Positions 1 through 9,088 are shown, counted from the first letter of the stretch. The stretch is DNA of 32,000 bases from Zygophlyctis sp. KS116 (GCA_054661495.1 BAAFSQ010000082.1:6397-38396); one strand, 5' to 3'. Notes: generated from the letters alone by a model not told the origin. Translations and numbers: made by a program.

Positions 1-2847
1 TGAGAAGCTTCAGAAGATACGGGAGGATTGAAGAAAGTAGGAGCATGACGGCTCTCCACCCAATTCTCATTTGCAAGATAACGTAAAGGTTTCGTATCAC
101 GAGCATTACCTCCGGTAAGAGCCATCAATGCAATAAAGTCTTCAGCAGATATTTTGAATAACGGTTCTTCTGCGACTAGCCATTTGACTCCCTCAGTACA
201 TGGAGGAGTAGTTAAAGATCCGATGTATTTGTAAAACGTCGGTACTTCTTTAAGTTCAAGAACGAATTCATCATAATTTGGTAAAAATGGATGATGGCCA
301 TGAACGGGAATATCCACAGCATGACTAACTAGTTCAGCTATAAATTCAGAGGAGAATTCAGCCAATTCGACAAAAGCACCTATAACTGCAAGGTGATTCC
401 CCAGTTTATGAACAAAATGAACTTCTGCAACGAATTCTCTTCCTTCGACTCTATGTTCAGAAGGAGTATGAATATGCCACTGAAGCAAATTGAAGGCTCC
501 TTCAGGGCGAATATATTTTCCAGTTACTTTGTTAGGAACAAACTTAATCACATCCCCTAAATGCTTTAGTTCCCCAGAAGTATTAGGATATATCAGCCTA
601 GGCAATGCACCATGGTTCTCCAAAACTCCATGAATTTCTTCCATTTCACGAGATTCAACTAATCATTAACAAGTTGTATATATTACAGTTTATCGGAGTT
701 TGATACATTCCATTACATTGAGGAGCAGTAAGTCCCCAAAAGAGAGGACCTTCAAATCCTTCATAAAAAACTTCGTGTGATTGCTCTGCTGAGTGTTGCT
801 CCTTATGATGATCAACGTGAGGATTGAAAATTTCTAGTCCTTTTCTTTGAGAAACCCAGTCATAATCTGCATTATTTTTCAGAGGAAGGGTATCACGTGC
901 ATTAAAACCAATTCTTTCCAAAAACATTTTTATGTGTTCTGGAGAAATAGTAAAAATAGGTTCTTCGGCAATTAGCCACTTAACACCTTCGGTACAAGGA
1001 GGTGTTGTCAATGATCCAACGTATTTAAAATATTTAGGACTTTCTTTGAATTTTTTTACAACTTCGTCGTATATTGGATGAAAGTGCACATGGTCACCTT
1101 TCGTCATATTCAGACCAACTTCAAGAGCTTGAGCTAAGAATTCATCTGTCTTATCCGCAATCTGGACAAAGCCTCCTAAAACAGCCAATGAGTTATCAAG
1201 CTTATGGACAAAATGAATTTCTCCGGGAAAGTCTCTTCCCTCTACTCTATGTTCTGAAGGTAAATGAATATGCCACTGAATCAACTGATGAATACCGTCA
1301 GTTCGATATAACAAGCCTTGGTCTGCAGCAGTTGTATTGACTACAAACTTTATGGTGTCACCAATATGCTTTAGTTCACCTTCAGCATTTGGATAAAAAA
1401 TGTGCGGCAAAAGGCCTTTATTCTCGACAAGGCCACCAATCGCTTTAAAATCTGCCGATTCTGGCTCTATATCAATTGGAGTTTGACGATTTCCGGCACA
1501 TGCAGGATAATTAATTGACCATCTTTCCGGCCCATATAATCCATTATATTCCCAATCAGTTGATACATTGTAGCCCACACCTAAAGGTGGATTGTAGAAC
1601 TCTTGTCCTTTTCGATGTTGGGTCCAGTTTACATCTTCCGCAAAATGTAGAGGCTGAGTTTCTCGGGAATTAAATCCCCACTTCTCCATCATATGTTTGG
1701 CATCATCCGGTGAAACTGTATAGATTGGCTCTGAAGCAATTAGCCAACGAACGCCTTCCTAAAAGTGAATATTAACAAACGTACAGTACATGGCGGGGTA
1801 GTTAAGGACCCGACATAACGATAAAATTTGGGGGATGATTTCAAGGCACCAATTGTTTCTGTATAATTGGGAGTAAACGAAGCATATTGACCGTAATTTA
1901 AAGGAGCCATTGCCTTGATCATATTACTCAGGATCGAGCTAGTAACATTTCCTATTTCAATAAATCCTCCAATAACAGCCAATTCTTTTCCTAGCTGATG
2001 AACGACTACAATTAATATAAATGAAAAAAGTACAATGAATCTCAGCGACATAATCTCGTCCTTCAACTCGATGCTCAGATGGTGTATGAATATGCCATTG
2101 AATCATATTATACTGTCCATCATTATGGGTATAAGTAGCATCTAATTTGCTGGGGAAGAACTTCACAACATCTCCAACATGTTTAAGTTTACCGGCAGAG
2201 TTAGGGTATGATATTTGAGGTAAAAAGCCATTATTATTAAGGACTCCGTGAATTTCTTCTGAAAAATGAGAACCCTCTTCAGGCATAACTTAAAATTATT
2301 AAATAGAAAGCATACTGTCTATTGGAGTTTGGTATTTTCCTTTACATTGCGGGAAACTTATTCCCCAACGTTGAGGACCTTCAATCCCTTCATATCCCCA
2401 TGGTTGACCATGTTTACAATAAGGAGATTGCAAGAAAATTTGCAATAGCTTACTGTTGATCCAAGCTCTTTTTGCAACTTTTCCGGCTGATTTAGATGTA
2501 TTATATGTTTTAGCAGCGGCAATCGCATCTTCTGCCAGCTTGCTTGAGGAAAATACATTTTCATCTATTGGTGTTATTAATAATTTTAATACATAAACGA
2601 AGTGCATATGATTTATGAGCTGGACACTCTTGGGCAAATTGGGAAGAATTCGATAATTTCAACTGATCCAAAAAGTCTCCTAATTGTGAATTTGGAATAA
2701 ATTACTTGCTTCATGCATTACGCGTTGATATCTCCATACTCGGCGTGCTACGACTTTAGCTTCATATTCAGTTGAATTAGTTCGATTTTGAGCTGCAGCG
2801 GTAGCTATTAGCAATCCAAGAATATAGATTGCCTTTGAGAGCAACAT
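1..2847 (-). CDS. Secreted multidomain alpha-carbonic anhydrase (CA-1; at least 3 tandem CA domains; 3' end runs off the window)
   Basis: ATG 2847 gives signal peptide MLLSKAIYILGLLIATAAA. Hand-spliced GT-AG introns 2680-2705, ~2565-2592, 2289-2315, 2006-2033, 1759-1784 and 659-686 give one frame. Each of three domains has Q[ST]PI[DN], QWHIH..SEH, E[IV]HFVH and GSLTTPPCTEGV.W. No stop before position 1. Confidence 0.9.
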
Positions 2848-2857
2848 AATTTATTGT

Positions 2858-2913
2858 ACGCGAGTAAATCAACGCGTAAATGGGCGCGTTCAATGTGACG
2901 TAATTGATCCTTG
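2858..2913. promoter_or_regulatory. CA-1 proximal promoter module: three CGCG boxes plus TGACGTAATTGATCCTT
   Basis: ACGCG 2858, ACGCGT 2872, GCGCGT 2884, TGACGTAA 2896-2903; the same architecture occurs upstream of all four CA genes. Confidence 0.65.
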
Positions 2914-2996
2914 TTTACTTTTACTTAAAGGTAATCATCCACCTCTCAAATGAACTGCAACAAACTTTGGGAAGAAAAGATCATTTATTTCAAGAC

Positions 2997-3941
2997 TTAA
3001 GACATGTAATAATCTGATTTTCGATTAATAGCCCAGTTAGGATCAGCTGGCATATACAGTGGCATGGTATTTCTGTAATTTGCAATAAGCTTCGATTTTA
3101 AGATATTAAAGTCAGCTACAGAGATTGTCAATAATGCATCGTCTGGAGATAAAACATGCCACTTAACGCCTTCCTATCTAATCAAACTTGTTAATATTAC
3201 AGTGCATGGGGGTGTCGTAAGAGATCCGGTATAACGATATATTTTTTTGGCCTTTTTAAATAAGGGTTGGATTTCCGAATAGTCTGGTTTATAGCTAACA
3301 TATGCCTCATGAGCAAGATTTTTTCCAGCCTTATATTAGGTAATCATATTTTTACATTAATCAACTGAGCAACAAATGGTGAAGAGACAGAGCCAACTTG
3401 GATCATGATTCCAATAACAGCCAAAGCAGTTGCATTTCTTTTTTGGTGAACAACTATTACTAAGATCAAAAATACTATTACAGTGAATCTCGGCAGCATA
3501 TGCTACTTTATGAATTCGATGTTCAGATAAGGAATGGATATGGAACTGAATCATATTGTAAACTCCATCTGGGCGAGTAAAAATGCCATCGTTTCCAGCA
3601 GACCCTGGAATATATTTCCAGGTATCGACAATATTTTTCAATTTACCTCCAGTAGTTGCGTTATAATTTGTTTCTGGCTTTGTTCCGGCAGCATTATCAA
3701 AGATTCCACTGATATTTGTTGCGAATGCAGCTTCCTCTGGATCGACTATGAACAATTATATTTCAAAGAAAATACTATTGATGGGGGACTGATATAATCC
3801 TTGGCACACACCTTCCTGTTCAAATCCCCATCGGGCCGGTCCAGGCAATCCTAGATAATTAAGTTATATCTATTTACCATTGTAAAGATCATCGGCAGAA
3901 ACATAAGTAAAAAGAAAAAGAGCAAAAGATAAGGAGAACAT
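2997..3941 (-). CDS. Secreted single-domain alpha-carbonic anhydrase (CA-2)
   Basis: MFSLSFALFLFTYVSA-DDLYNGLPGPARWG; QSPIN, QFHIHSLSEH, EIHFVH, GSLTTPPCTEGVKW; five short GT-AG introns (e.g. 3851-3877, 3746-3775); ends RKSDYYMS* with TAA at 2997-2999. Confidence 0.9.
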
Positions 3942-3961
3942 TATAAAACTGACTACTCTAA

Positions 3962-4005
3962 CCGCGACGCGAATAAGAAGCGCGTTGAGATGACGTAACA
4001 GATCC
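3962..4005. promoter_or_regulatory. CA-2 proximal promoter module
   Basis: CCGCG 3962, ACGCG 3967, CGCGT 3981, TGACGTAAcaGATCC from 3991, 50 nt from the ATG. Confidence 0.65.
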
Positions 4006-4061
4006 CCAAATTCAAGTCTCAAAGAGAAATTAAAATTTTAGTAAAAGAATTTACTTCGAAT

Positions 4062-5013
4062 TTAAGCGTAATAATCCGACTTTCGGTTTGTGGCCCAATT
4101 ACTGTCAGATACATAGTAAAGTGGCTGAGTCATTCTAGAATTGAATGGCATGACGTTTTTCAACGATTTATAGTCATCAGGGGAAATTGTCAAGAATACT
4201 GAAGAGGCAACATGCCACTTTACGCCCTCCTAATTTTTAATGTAAAACTTATACAGTGCATGGAGGAGTAGTTAGTGATCCGGTATATCTAAAGATTTTT
4301 GGGCTGGCTTTCAATCCTGAAATTACTGAAGAGTAATTGGGAGAAAAACTGGCGTAGGCTAATGGAGCCAAGTCTTTTCCTGCCTAAAATCAATAATTTT
4401 GTTGAATACATTAATAAAAGCAGATGTAAATGGATCGGTAACGTTAGCAAAATCGACAAACACTCCGATAACCGCAAGTTCACTTCCTCCTTGTTTTTTA
4501 TGAACAACTTTTAAATTAAAATATAAATACTTTTTACAGTGGAATTCTGCTGCAAAAGATCTGCCATCAATTCGATGCTCTGATGGAGAATGGATATGGA
4601 ACTGGATCATGTCATAAACTCCATCGGGTCTTGTGAAGTTTCCATCTGGTATAGTCACACTTCCGGCTGGATAAGTAGGGTAGTATTTTAGTTCCTCTCC
4701 TAAATTCTTGAGTTTTCCAGTGCCAGTTGCAGACCAGGCGACATTTGGAAAACTTCCATTGTTGGTCATGATCCCATTCAAAGTAGTACCGAAATGAGTG
4801 TCAGCTAATTCGACTACAGTTAAAGATTAAATATGTACAATTGATTGGGGATTGCAATCTGCCTAGGCATTGATTGGAACCGTATTTTTTTTCCTGTCCC
4901 CAACGAGCTGGGCCATATAATCCTTTCTAATTAAAATTAATGCGTGTACCATTATAAAGATCATCTGCATGGACACAGCTTAAAAGTAGCAAAATAGAAG
5001 TTAAAGATATCAT
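4062..5013 (-). CDS. Secreted single-domain alpha-carbonic anhydrase (CA-3)
   Basis: MISLTSILLLLSCVHA-DDLYNGLYGPARWG; QSPIN, QFHIHSPSEH, EFHFVH, GSLTTPPCTEGVKW; short introns at the same positions as CA-2; ends RKSDYYA* with TAA at 4062-4064. Confidence 0.9.
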
Positions 5014-5039
5014 ACTAGGTTCTTTCAGTAAGAGTTGAT

Positions 5040-5100
5040 ACGCGACTAAGCGCGCATAACGCGACGCGTTTAATGCTACCTGTGACGTAATTGATCCTTG
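5040..5100. promoter_or_regulatory. CA-3 proximal promoter module
   Basis: Four CGCG cores (5041, 5051, 5060, 5065); TGTGACGTAATTGATCCTTG at 5081-5100 is identical to 2894-2913. Confidence 0.65.
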
Positions 5101-5191
5101 CCTTCAACATGCACTGCTATGAATTCTTTAAGGTCATGATTTACTGATAAAATATATTCCAGATTCAGGAAAAAAAGAATTTTATTCTTAT

Positions 5192-6128
5192 TTAGGCGTA
5201 ATAATCAGACTTTCTTTTCACATTCCACTGTTGATCACCAACATAATAAAGAGGCTTTGTTAATCTAGCATTGAATGGCATAACCTTCTTCAATGCATTA
5301 TAATCACTGGGGGATATCTTTAAAAAAACATCTGAAGCAACATGCCATCTGACTCCCTCCTAAAATATAAAACTTGAAAAATTACCCAGCATGGTGGAGT
5401 TGTCAATGATCCCATGTAGCGATAGATTTGTTTACTGGCTTTTAACCCACTTATTACAGTGGAATAACCAGGCGTAAAAGATACATTAGCATGTTTAGCC
5501 AAGTTTTTTCCAGCCTATTCTTTAAAACCAAAGCATTCTTACATTAACAAAGGCAGCAGTGAATGGGTCTGACTGGCTGTCAAGATCCACAAATGCTCCA
5601 ATAACTGCAAGTTCACTTCCTCCTTGTTTTTTATGAACAACTTCTTGGTTAATCACTATCAATTTTACAGTGGAATTCGGCTGCAAAAGATCTGCCATTA
5701 ACACGATGCTCTGATGGAGAGTGGATGTGGAATTGTATCAAGTCATAAACTCCATCGGGTCTAGTAAAAGTGCCATCCGGAGAGCTGGGGTAATATTTAA
5801 GTTCCTCGCCAAGATTCTTGAGTTTGCCGCCAGCATTTGCAGTCCAGGCAACATTTGGAAAAGTTCCATTGTTAGTCATGATTCCATTCAAAGAAGTGCT
5901 GAAATCAGCATTTTCTGTTTCAACTGATTATTAAGGATTGAAGAAACTTTTACTATTGATTGGTGATTGGTAACTACCATGACAATCGTTAGGGCCAATT
6001 CCATCTGCGAAACTCCATCGTGCAGGTCCGATTATTCCTATATAATTAATTCGAATGCATTCACCATTGTAGATGTCATCAGCGACAACACTGCTAAAGC
6101 TCAAGCCCAAGATTATTAATGAAATCAT
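5192..6128 (-). CDS. Secreted single-domain alpha-carbonic anhydrase (CA-4)
   Basis: MISLIILGLSFSSVVA-DDIYNG..GPARW; QSPIN, QFHIHSPSEH, EFHFVH, GSLTTPPCWEGVRW; conserved short introns; ends RKSDYYA* with TAA at 5192-5194. Confidence 0.9.
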
Positions 6129-6143
6129 CTCAGAAATGATATA

Positions 6144-6175
6144 ACGCGTAAAGGATCAATGACGTAATAGATAAG
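6144..6175. promoter_or_regulatory. CA-4 proximal promoter module
   Basis: ACGCGT 6144-6149; AAGGATCAATGACGTAA 6151-6167, whose reverse complement matches the CA-1/CA-3 element at 15 of 17 positions. Confidence 0.65.
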
Positions 6176-6287
6176 TATGAGTCGATTAATTTATTATATT
6201 GATCAAGATGAGTATGATGTCCTAATTTAGCAAAAAAAATGGTTTATAATGACTGGTTAGATTTTAGAATCTAGATTTTAATTGTGA

Positions 6288-7443
6288 CTAACTTACACTC
6301 AATTCAATGTCTGGAACGGTCGCAGGGGTTTGATCTTTGTTATCTTGGAGTCTATCAGTACTATTGATCAGATTCTTTTGAGCTTCTGGAGCTGGATCAG
6401 CTTTATACATCTTGATGTAGTTTAAAAAAAGTATCATTGCTGCAGCAGATACTAAAAAAAGTGCCCAAAAAAATCCAAGATAATCTGCTGTACAGCCGAT
6501 TGGAGGGGAACCAGGCTGAACATTACGAATAGCTGGGAGTGCGAATATCATACTAGTTCCTACTCCCAGTGTTGGAGGCTCAACCTTTCTTCTTCGTATA
6601 CAGAGAGTAAAAGCCAACCAAAACATGCTAAGAGAAAGCAGCCACATTAACGATGCAATAAATAAAGAGAAAAATCTTTGGGTTGGGCCTCTGTATATAT
6701 TAACTTCCACAATTAGAATTTGAAAATTATCATCAGAAGCGTCCCGTAATGTTGTCGCCATTTGCCATCCTTCTAAATTATTCATTATTGAGAGTGACAT
6801 TGGTACTTTAGAACTAGATATTTATTATAATATTATAATTACCTTTCATTTTTAAAAGTATTGGTCCAAGAGCCTGATAAAATAAAATCCGCAGAGTACT
6901 CATCAAAAGGATAAAAATTTGGATTTCCTGATTTGAAAGTAAATGTGATGTCTGGAGATGACATCATTTGATTTGATTTGAAATTCTCTGTGATTGCATC
7001 AAAATTAAATGTAATCTATAAATAAATTCTCCATAATCATACCTGTCCATTCGGTGTCCGATCAAGACCATCTAGATTATCTCTCATGTTACCCCTTGGA
7101 AAAAGTCCAAAATGAACTCTATATGTAAGTAATTTTGTATCCAGACTTGTTAGATTTCCATAAATCGCTAATCCCTTGCATTAGATCTATACTAAATTAC
7201 AGTAAAATTGTCCGGTATATCCCAATTTTTAATTCGATTGATTGACGTAAAAGTCCCAATTCCTAAATTGCTTTGCTTCCCATAAGCAACAAGAATTGAT
7301 AATATAGTTGTCAGCATTAAAAATCCCAAAACGATTACTAAACTCTTACTGAATTTCTTAATCTTTGGAGTATTAAATTCATTACTGATCGCCGCTAGAT
7401 TTTCTTCACTAAATCTTATATATTTATTTCTAAAAGCATTCAT
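6288..7443 (-). CDS. DUF4436-type membrane protein with Pro-loop pentameric ligand-gated ion channel-like motifs
   Basis: Introns 7175-7200, 7016-7042 and 6814-6842 join ORFs 7192..7443 and 6288..6800. The protein has an N-terminal TM, then SLDTKLLTYRV, NFYPFDEY, NIYR, and three hydrophobic helices with MIFALPAIRNVQPGSPPIGCTAD (DUF4436-like signature, recognised from memory). Confidence 0.8.
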
Positions 7444-7483
7444 TAAATAAGGAATTTTTAGAAAACGTCATCGAATGAAGTCA

Positions 7484-8197
7484 TTAGACCATCATCGGAA
7501 TCCATTTCTTGAATCTTTTTGGCGTATCATATCTTATCTTATACCATTTCCACTGCTCTGTGGCAGATAAATGTAAATCCACAATAACCCAAATTAAAAC
7601 CAGCAATGAAATAAAATGAAATTGAGACATGATCGTCATTCCAAAATACAAGATCACTTCAAAAAAGTAATGTGGGCATGCTGTATTTGAGAAATATCCT
7701 TGATTAGGCAGGGGATACTTTTGTTTAGAGCAGTGTAATTCTCTTAAATAAGAATGAGCCATGAATTGTTCTATAGTCCCAAACAGCCATATTGAACCTC
7801 CCAACAGTAAATTCCTACTTGGAATGATATCCCAAGCCCAACTTGTATGTAAATAATATAAAATTCCAATCATATAATGAGTAATATGCATTTTTGACTC
7901 TGATCTTTTCGAAACAAGACATTCATAGAATCGTCTGACACAGTGAATCAAGAACAGCAAAGTAACAATCGGCTGATCATACCGTTTCCAGACTAGAGCG
8001 ATCAAACTAGAAAATATCCCAACTATATAGAAATGTAAAAACCAGAATTTAGGAACCAAGTACTTCCTATCATGATCTACCAATGTTTTCCCAAACGGAA
8101 AGAATATATCCTTGAGAATTGGAATATTTGATATAATCAAAACCGAAATTGTGGCACCAGAGTAAAACAGTGCTAACCAAAAGTGTAGAAAATTCAT
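7484..8197 (-). CDS. DFG10: Polyprenal/polyprenol reductase (steroid 5-alpha-reductase family, DFG10/SRD5A3-like)
   Basis: Multi-TM ORF with VPKFWFLHFY, HCVRRFYEC, MHITHY, CPHYFFEVILY and WKWY; intronless. Confidence 0.85.
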   Translation of the reverse strand: MNFLHFWLALFYSGATISVLIISNIPILKDIFFPFGKTLVDHDRKYLVPKFWFLHFYIVGIFSSLIALVWKRYDQPIVTLLFLIHCVRRFYECLVSKRSESKMHITHYMIGILYYLHTSWAWDIIPSRNLLLGGSIWLFGTIEQFMAHSYLRELHCSKQKYPLPNQGYFSNTACPHYFFEVILYFGMTIMSQFHFISLLVLIWVIVDLHLSATEQWKWYKIRYDTPKRFKKWIPMMV

Positions 8198-8209
8198 TTT
8201 ATTATAAAA

Positions 8210-9088
8210 CTAATCCGTTACAGTCAATGGTTTCTCTAATTGAATAATTTCTCTACGAATTCCATCTACAGAAACAAAAACTGTCGAGATCTTCCAATTT
8301 TGAAAGACTCTTCTGATATGATTTAAAAACATTGTTAATGATCCTGAACATCCAAAATACTGATATTTAGCAGCTATTAATACTTTTCCTCCTGGTGATA
8401 AACAATGATCAATTAATAAAGTTTGACTATTATAACTAGATGAATCATAAATAGTTTCTGAACTTAGAATCAAATCATATTTTTGAGTCAATTCCATTGA
8501 TAATGATTCCCAATCCCCTGCCCAAAATTCTGCATTCTTTAAATTCTTTATAGATAATAAGTGTTCAAATATTCCATTATCAAAATTAACCTTTATCTCC
8601 TGATCTGTATTTAAAATAGCATTTGGTAGAGTAGCATGAGTTAAAACCTGAATATTATAATCTTGAAATGTAACACTAGCATTATTCATTAAAGCATAAA
8701 TCCCAGGTAATCCCGATCCACATCCTAATTCAAGTACTCTGATCCCATTTAAAGAGTCAGGATCTAAAGCCAAATATCTTGTTAAATCTAAGCAACATTC
8801 CCAAGTTTTAAATCCGCCTTGATAGACTAGAGGAATAATATCATTAGATTGCAACATCTCAACAGTCTCTTGATCATCAACAGTCGAAAGTTTAATGTCT
8901 GAAATCATTCGCTTGATCATTATGAGATTATTTGAAATTGAAATCGGCTCCGACTCTACTATTATCTCTGAATCTTGAAAGGAGTTTATATTAAGCATAA
9001 TGCATGGTAAGGATTTGACTGTCATATTTTGTCCGAATGCATCAGAGTCTCTGGTAATTGGATCTGACTCCGACTGAAACAAGAGCAT
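8210..9088 (-). CDS. HPM1: Histidine protein methyltransferase 1 (HPM1/METTL18-like)
   Basis: VYQGGFKTWECCLDL, SAM motif VLELGCGSGLPG, FQDYN, YDLILSSETIY, AAKYQYFGCSGS. Confidence 0.85.
   Translation of the reverse strand: MLLFQSESDPITRDSDAFGQNMTVKSLPCIMLNINSFQDSEIIVESEPISISNNLIMIKRMISDIKLSTVDDQETVEMLQSNDIIPLVYQGGFKTWECCLDLTRYLALDPDSLNGIRVLELGCGSGLPGIYALMNNASVTFQDYNIQVLTHATLPNAILNTDQEIKVNFDNGIFEHLLSIKNLKNAEFWAGDWESLSMELTQKYDLILSSETIYDSSSYNSQTLLIDHCLSPGGKVLIAAKYQYFGCSGSLTMFLNHIRRVFQNWKISTVFVSVDGIRREIIQLEKPLTVTD

Follow-up and report, generated by a model that had tools for sequence, protein, structure and literature searches.

Two described systems come closest to the locus considered here. 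In the first, from yeast, NCE103, a gene for a carbonic anhydrase (CA), is induced at low CO2 by the bZIP factor Cst6/Rca1, which acts through the site TGACGTCA (PMC3257301). The other system is the Pro-loop superfamily, that of the pentameric ligand-gated ion channels, abbreviated pLGICs, in which the motif [F/Y]PxD at the tip of the beta6-beta7 loop holds a Pro that is 100% conserved (PMC4795631). The positions that correspond to this motif (YPFD in what follows), to an Arg just before membrane helix M1 (the pre-M1 Arg), and to a Pro between helices M2 and M3 are among the most conserved of the superfamily, and a 2016 census recorded no pLGICs in fungi (Jaiteh et al., PMC4795631). Herein, we describe a stretch of 32,000 nucleotides (nt) from Zygophlyctis sp. 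KS116 (GCA_054661495.1, BAAFSQ010000082.1), hereafter the window, in which an array of alpha-class CA genes stands next to a gene of the DUF4436 family. The best explanation, which we hold to be rather likely, is that a separate CA array with a shared promoter module and a divergent relative of the Pro-loop receptors lie side by side in a very compact genome and that their adjacency is incidental.

The window spans 6397-38396 of contig C82 in an assembly of 12.7 Mb and 1,175 contigs, and the metagenome runs that contain it come from lakes and other freshwater. All genes of the finding are on the minus strand, separated by intergenic gaps of 12-180 bp. The RNA data are assembled metatranscriptome contigs, which speak of presence and splicing and not of expression level.

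The array fills positions 1-6128, where pieces of open reading frames (ORFs) from four co-oriented alpha-CA genes match PF00194, scoring up to 112.6 bits as protein queries and, when the genome was searched, 107.8 bits (cut-off 27). Three of the genes encode a single domain, namely CA1 (5192-6128), CA2 (4062-5013), and CA3 (2997-3941, with short introns). CA4, on the other hand, has five: it starts at codon 2847-2845, occupies 1-2847, and runs on to C82:4896, its ORFs continuing left of the window (L007) and PF00194 matching at five places on C82. Eight CA domains are found on the contig (one in each of CA1-CA3 and five in CA4, three of the latter inside the window), and all eight keep QxHxH..SEH, ExH, and GSLTTPPC intact, which make up the zinc ligands and the Glu106/Thr199 network. 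The preliminary description had reported four co-oriented alpha-CA genes, taken to be secreted; PF00194 and a reading of the sequence bear out the four genes, with signal-peptide-like leaders, and the "at least 6 catalytic domains" given earlier was an undercount. As read from the sequence, CA1-CA4 each open with a short hydrophobic N-terminus ending before DD or Q, and a hydrophobic C-terminal tail is seen in none of the four, so that the products are likely to be secreted in soluble form.

Gene and domain duplication gave rise to the array. Outside it, a genome-wide PF00194 search found one CA-like gene (C232:6844-8262), a 532-amino-acid (aa) open frame over which the profile matches are split in two parts. 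RNA contigs from a lake metatranscriptome fall on CA2 (4538-4679, ending at the predicted 5' splice site) and CA3 (3497-3647), and one reaches 2801-2836 in CA4. The splice site at which the CA2 contig stops belongs to a predicted intron of 30 nt (about 4507-4537). We know of no described five-domain alpha-CA, and a literature search on multi-domain alpha-CAs, which covered few subscription journals, found nothing relevant.

The four CA genes have a short proximal module in common. In the window there are five copies of the 8-mer TTACGTCA, where 0.53 would be expected (none of 100 shuffles reached five). Four of them sit 32-70 nt upstream of the start codons of CA1-CA4, with ACGCG boxes clustered beside them in the same spacers. 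The modules were delimited by motif counts or enrichment and by alignment; they lie at 6144-6172 for CA1 (ATCTATTACGTCA and one ACGCGT box), 5040-5095 for CA2 (ATCAATTACGTCA and ACGCG boxes), 3967-4003 for CA3 (ATCTGTTACGTCA and ACGCG boxes), and 2858-2908 for CA4 (ATCAATTACGTCA and then three ACGCG boxes). Since paralogy alone could explain such shared sequence, an independent test was sought in a related species, represented by a 13.8-kb metagenome contig (L153). On this contig TTACGTCA is present at exactly four sites; CGCG boxes follow every one of them, then a CA start codon with a signal-like leader, and each of the four modules of the window has its equivalent there amid surrounding spacers that have diverged. 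Such retention is a phylogenetic footprint, and, judged by sequence comparison, the CA promoter module is a real conserved cis-element. The shared module that had been described earlier at all four CA genes is therefore upheld by enrichment, alignment, and conservation alike. The fifth copy of TTACGTCA (7243-7250) falls in the coding sequence of DUF4436 exon 1, is not conserved at the corresponding locus of a third species (L012), and is probably there by chance.

Candidate readers for both halves of the module are available, as profile searches of the genome returned five or more bZIP matches and four or more for KilA-N/APSES; a CG-1/CAMTA domain was not found in the genome by such a search. 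We propose that ATC-NN-TTACGTCA would act as a site like the cyclic AMP response element (CRE) for a bZIP dimer, and that the one to three ACGCG(T) boxes, of the MluI cell-cycle box (MCB) type, would be read by APSES/MBF factors. The module would then drive all four CA genes and the array would be switched on as a unit. By analogy with Cst6/Rca1 and NCE103, the trigger may be low CO2, and outside the cell the enzymes would bring CO2, HCO3-, and H+ to equilibrium faster. A wider CO2 regulon was considered and set aside: genome-wide, the composite pattern is found at the four CA promoters and at four other places, the controls give seven matches, and the extra sites, which are thus at about control level, adjoin DUF3987-like and GATA/RING genes. 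The pattern of TTACGTCA followed by ACGCG also stands upstream of two paralogous DUF3987-like genes with near-identical spacers (C236:8788-8828, L010; C484:4740-4765, L011) and, in addition, at C112:29670.

Directly upstream of CA1 and co-oriented with it lies the membrane-protein gene in which pentameric-channel motifs had been noted. It proves to be a DUF4436 gene (6288-7443, about 357 aa), and the motifs are present as YPFD, an Arg before a membrane helix, and an RNxQPG loop. Its ORF at 6288-6800, which belongs to exon 4, matches PF14494 with E 1.9e-22 and 80.2 bits (cut-off 23.2; 84.2 bits in the genome search). Frame analysis yields four exons (7443-7201, 7174-7043, 7015-6843, and 6813-6288) and introns of 26, 27, and 29 nt (7175-7200, 7016-7042, and 6814-6842, respectively). 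One metatranscriptome contig covers 7100-7387 with exactly the 26-nt intron removed, so the gene is transcribed and spliced in nature; further RNA contigs fall on exon 4. The predicted protein consists of an N-terminal membrane helix, a beta-sandwich ectodomain containing YPFD, and three helices resembling M1-M3, together with the conserved RNxQPG loop.

An exhaustive HMMER search with exon 4 returned about 1,300 cluster representatives at E <= 0.001, full-length members being typically about 350-380 aa long. In the family alignment, the N-terminal membrane helix is followed by an ectodomain (about 170 aa) in which YPFD hardly varies, by a nearly invariant Arg directly before the second membrane helix, and by the extremely conserved stretch RKVEPPT ... 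LFALPAxRNxQPGxPxIG..D, which precedes the last helix. Each of these features is encoded in the exons of the window as well, YPFD in exon 3. The family is widespread in fungi and occurs in Actinomycetota and Pseudomonadota as well (ESM Atlas clusters, TM 0.70). For example, six copies, with scores of up to 328 bits for the Pfam profile, are present in the genome of Mycobacterium rhizamassiliense. These lie on C1 at about 566-568 kb, 651-656 kb, 4.02 Mb, and 5.55 Mb, four of them in two close pairs, and have as neighbors glmS, a Rhomboid_2 protein, a sulfatase with an FGE-sulfatase, and a TylF methyltransferase; across the Mycobacterium neighborhoods no consistent partner and no CA was found. 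Contig JADGKC010001541.1 of GCA_027604625.1 (L156) has four DUF4436 genes within 9.6 kb, and a metagenome scaffold (L157) has two side by side. Such local clusters would fit a family that expands locally, by analogy with channel subunit families. In a literature search covering few subscription journals, neither a function nor a fold was assigned to DUF4436 and no link to pLGICs was made; on pLGICs in fungi and on permuted pLGICs, too, it turned up nothing of relevance.

The predicted fold resembles that of a pLGIC without its last helix. AlphaFold2, run without templates on a 369-aa homologue, gave a model with a predicted local distance difference test score (pLDDT) of 86.5 and a predicted template modeling score of 0.77, in which a helix (residues 12-46) precedes a beta sandwich (48-216), three further helices (218-247, 254-271, and 283-314), and a disordered tail. 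When this model was compared with the PDB by Foldseek, all 50 listed matches were pLGICs (GABA-A, GluCl, GlyR, DeCLIC, GLIC, and alpha7), the best having probability 1.0 and E of about 1e-9, and E 0.001 or better was reached by 500 matches or more. When the first sequence was a different one, that of a Mycobacterium member, the resulting second model (pLDDT 89.6) again returned pLGICs in 50 of 50 listed matches, with GLIC at 18-19% identity. In VIA-align, 216-225 residues of the 369-aa model were superposed with Z of about 10, and the match is collinear, starting at beta1 and extending through M3. When VIA was run exhaustively against 48,161 representative chains, the ten best were all pLGICs (Z 9.1-10.0 over 210-226 residues), and the other rows of similar Z among the matches listed were helical proteins or bundles, aligned over about 70-110 residues and nearly all in the helical part.

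Profile-profile alignment points the same way. Aligned by hhalign with seven bacterial pLGICs, the DUF4436 profile reached E 2.5e-4 over 152 columns, in a register that places YPFD on FPFD, the family's Arg on the invariant Arg before M1, and the RNxQPG proline on the M2-M3 Pro that is invariant in the bacterial set, while reversed, column-shuffled, and block-shuffled controls gave E 0.04-0.9. Searched against the PDB, the family profile had a sub-threshold match to the pH-gated chloride channel 9rgn, in which the YPFD motifs of the two coincide and the family's Arg falls on the pre-M1 Arg. Within the family, the Y and P of YPFD and the Pro of RNxQPG are each conserved in at least 90%. The label "GLIC-like" given to this neighbor in the preliminary description thus holds in the sense that two template-free homologue models match only pLGICs over both domains and that hhalign aligns three signature positions. 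We consider it quite probable that DUF4436 is truly homologous to pLGICs. As a divergent Pro-loop relative, it would use the YPFD loop, the pre-M1 Arg, and the M2-M3 loop to form the interface between ectodomain and membrane, and it would assemble into an oligomeric receptor or channel, perhaps one that conducts ions; a channel or receptor function is, however, something that we put forward only tentatively, as possible rather than probable. By the positive-inside rule, as read from the sequence, the N-terminal helix runs from inside to outside in the same direction as M4, so that the order M4-like helix, ectodomain, and M1-M3 can be described as a permutation.

How far gene order connects the two parts of the locus can be followed in relatives. 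In L153, DUF4436 and the CA genes are adjacent and co-oriented as in the window; all nine genes from the methyltransferase to a palmitoyl thioesterase are collinear there (13.8 kb), and because the whole block is kept, the adjacency is uninformative on function. At L012, the reductase gene of the Steroid_dh family that precedes DUF4436 in the window still adjoins it, and the 195 bp past the DUF4436 stop codon contain no module and no CA start, only the apparent end of a convergent ORF. The L012 DUF4436 is 87% identical to that of L153, and the DNA downstream of it (1990-2184) is different and has no match in this genome, which suggests either a rearrangement or an assembly chimera at this boundary. 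The genome of Zygophlyctis sp. KS116 has four DUF4436 copies, of which only the window copy adjoins CA genes, the other three being on contigs without CA. Likewise, no CA accompanies DUF4436 at five other loci, in four NCBI assemblies (two of them from what we take to be zoosporic fungi) and one metagenome scaffold, where its neighbors are unrelated genes or more DUF4436. The synteny proposed as a check on the locus is therefore confined to one collinear near relative.

Several readings compete with the one given at the outset. As regards the CA promoters, their shared sequence could be a leftover of recent tandem duplication with no regulatory role, which would suit four paralogous genes of which CA1 and CA2 are close copies; yet the aligned upstream regions are only 51% identical overall while the 13-nt core ATC-NN-TTACGTCA is invariant, and a species with protein identities of 74% (DUF4436 exon 4), 69% (Steroid_dh), and about 61% (CA) keeps all four modules although the spacers differ. 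We regard this leftover explanation as extremely improbable. As regards DUF4436, the protein could be merely pLGIC-shaped, that is, a membrane-anchored beta sandwich with a three-helix bundle that is convergent or was modeled so and that serves as a sensor, scaffold, or enzyme partner. A number of observations suit such a look-alike and weigh against a Pro-loop relative. The models are those of homologues, 46% identical over the last exon, and not of the window's own spliced protein; their TM-scores to solved channels are only 0.3-0.4, with root-mean-square deviations of 5-6 Å, and the Z of about 10 is not far above the background of 7-8 given for the tool, three-helix bundles by themselves reaching Z 8-9. 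None of 73 DUF4436 members matches PF02931 or PF02932 even at E 10, and PF02931 has no match anywhere in this genome. A C-terminal M4 is absent, the models showing three helices after the ectodomain and then the disordered tail, and so is the kink proline of M1 (77% conserved in the superfamily), which is missing from the family consensus and from the window protein, the M1 Pro of the bacterial pLGICs being left unmatched in the hhalign alignment. Moreover, no hint of ion transport comes from the bacterial neighbors (glmS, the rhomboid-like protein, and the sulfatase with FGE). A three-copy complex prediction for homologue residues 8-320 scored 0.24 and 0.02 against a mark of 0.32, which is evidence neither way. 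Against the look-alike stands that, as modeled, both domains are matched collinearly by pLGICs only among the 48,161 chains, that two independent models agree, that the shuffled hhalign controls are more than 100-fold weaker, and that the three most conserved features of DUF4436 fall, with matching spacing, on three signature positions of the superfamily (PMC4795631). On balance, the look-alike is unlikely, and we continue to read DUF4436 as a divergent member of the superfamily.

The preliminary description had gone further and joined the CA array and DUF4436 into one extracellular CO2/pH sensing module, in which H+ or HCO3- made by the CAs gates the channel and one CRE-type regulator governs both. 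Some findings favor this over an incidental adjacency. In two species the genes lie next to each other in one orientation, and a TGACGT core stands near the start codon of all five genes; the one that had been placed in the 40-bp gap upstream of DUF4436 is indeed there, at 7465-7470 on the minus strand. It is part of the 8-mer GATGACGT (7465-7472, 22 nt upstream of the start codon), which is invariant in the window, L153, and L012 while its flanks vary, and no TGACGT was found within 1.5 kb of the three CA-unlinked paralogues, so that a bZIP input common to DUF4436 and the CA array may exist on sequence grounds. Both products are predicted to face the cell exterior (from topology and signal-peptide-like N-termini), and RNA contigs of both occur in one lake metatranscriptome run (X19). 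Furthermore, some pLGICs are pH-gated, and the PDB titles matched include sTeLIC, a pH-gated chloride channel, and GLIC, the proton-gated channel of Gloeobacter. On the other side, TGACGT as a bare 6-mer stays at chance level across the window (13 copies where 6 are expected, with 7 of the 13 outside the CA promoters), GATGACGT has 223 copies genome-wide, and the composite module is missing from the DUF4436 gap, where neither an ACGCG box nor an ATC spacer is present, the core is inverted, and the second half-site varies. The adjacency lies within a fully collinear block, L012 has neither module nor CA start in the stretch downstream, and no CA was found beside the three paralogues, at the five other loci, or next to the Mycobacterium copies. 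Finally, a likeness to the GLIC superfamily gives no indication of the ligand, and nothing points to gating by protons or bicarbonate. The functional coupling is thus not supported, given the missing module, the abundance of GATGACGT, and the restriction of the adjacency to a collinear relative. A sensing module of this kind appears improbable to us, and we give coupling of DUF4436 to the CA array in any form an equally small chance. A fuller reading, in which DUF4436 would be an unrecognized permuted Pro-loop branch with its outer helix at the N-terminus, forming oligomeric ligand-gated channels in fungi and actinobacteria, with one copy in this chytrid lineage wired to the CA array by a conserved bZIP half-site so as to read CA-made H+/HCO3- at the cell surface, is more improbable still. 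Most likely, the neighborhood of DUF4436 and the CA genes is inherited gene order and not a functional unit, in line with the separate array and Pro-loop relative that we favor.

Two further genes complete the setting. The Steroid_dh family gene, a membrane reductase resembling polyprenol reductase (7484-8197; PF02544, E 1.5e-13), holds the same position in L012 and L153, and upstream of it lies a Methyltransf_16-type methyltransferase gene (8210-9088; PF10294), which holds the same position in L153. From the methyltransferase stop codon to the Steroid_dh start codon there are 12 bp (8198-8209), and in L153 the two gene calls overlap by 4 nt (909-912), so either the promoters lie inside the upstream genes or the genes are co-transcribed.

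The array contributes an unusual five-domain and predicted secreted alpha-CA from a lake chytrid, which bears on carbon chemistry at the interface between fungus and host or substrate. Its compact conserved promoter, combining a bZIP site with MCB-like boxes, offers a study system for how transcription responds to CO2 beyond the yeasts. Should DUF4436 prove a true Pro-loop relative, receptors of the pLGIC type could no longer be said to be missing from the fungal kingdom, contrary to the 2016 census (PMC4795631), and a widespread family (about 1,300 cluster representatives, mycobacterial copies included) would gain a testable mechanism. It would also follow that the superfamily tolerates the loss of M4 and its replacement by an N-terminal helix.

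Compared with the known systems, the regulation proposed for the array has its closest precedent in Cst6/Rca1 and NCE103, with which it shares a CRE-type bZIP site in a CA promoter. The site found here agrees with that of yeast at 7 of 8 positions. It differs in lying 32-70 nt from the start codon, whereas the yeast site is at -285, and in being paired with ACGCG boxes; moreover, the predicted targets are secreted alpha-class CAs, whereas the yeast target is a cytosolic beta-class CA. The enzymes themselves belong to the same catalytic family and have the same motif set as secreted fungal and duplicated eukaryotic alpha-CAs. Among their homologues, one from a rotifer (558 aa) aligns over 86% of the query length, and further ones, about 600 aa long, have room for two domains. 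The array stands apart from other alpha-CAs by five concatenated motif-intact domains in one polypeptide next to three single-domain paralogues.

For DUF4436, the comparison is with pLGICs such as GLIC, ELIC, GluCl, and GABA-A, in which a beta-sandwich ectodomain precedes the helices M1-M3 as is predicted here. In both, the [F/Y]PxD of the membrane-facing loop, the pre-M1 Arg, and the M2-M3 Pro are conserved and in register, and the conserved residues cluster at the interface between ectodomain and membrane. DUF4436 differs in having neither M4 nor a large M3-M4 loop but an uncleaved N-terminal membrane helix instead, in lacking the M1 kink proline and a sequence match at the Pfam level, and in its longer and extremely conserved M2-M3-like loop, RNxQPGxPxIGxxxD.

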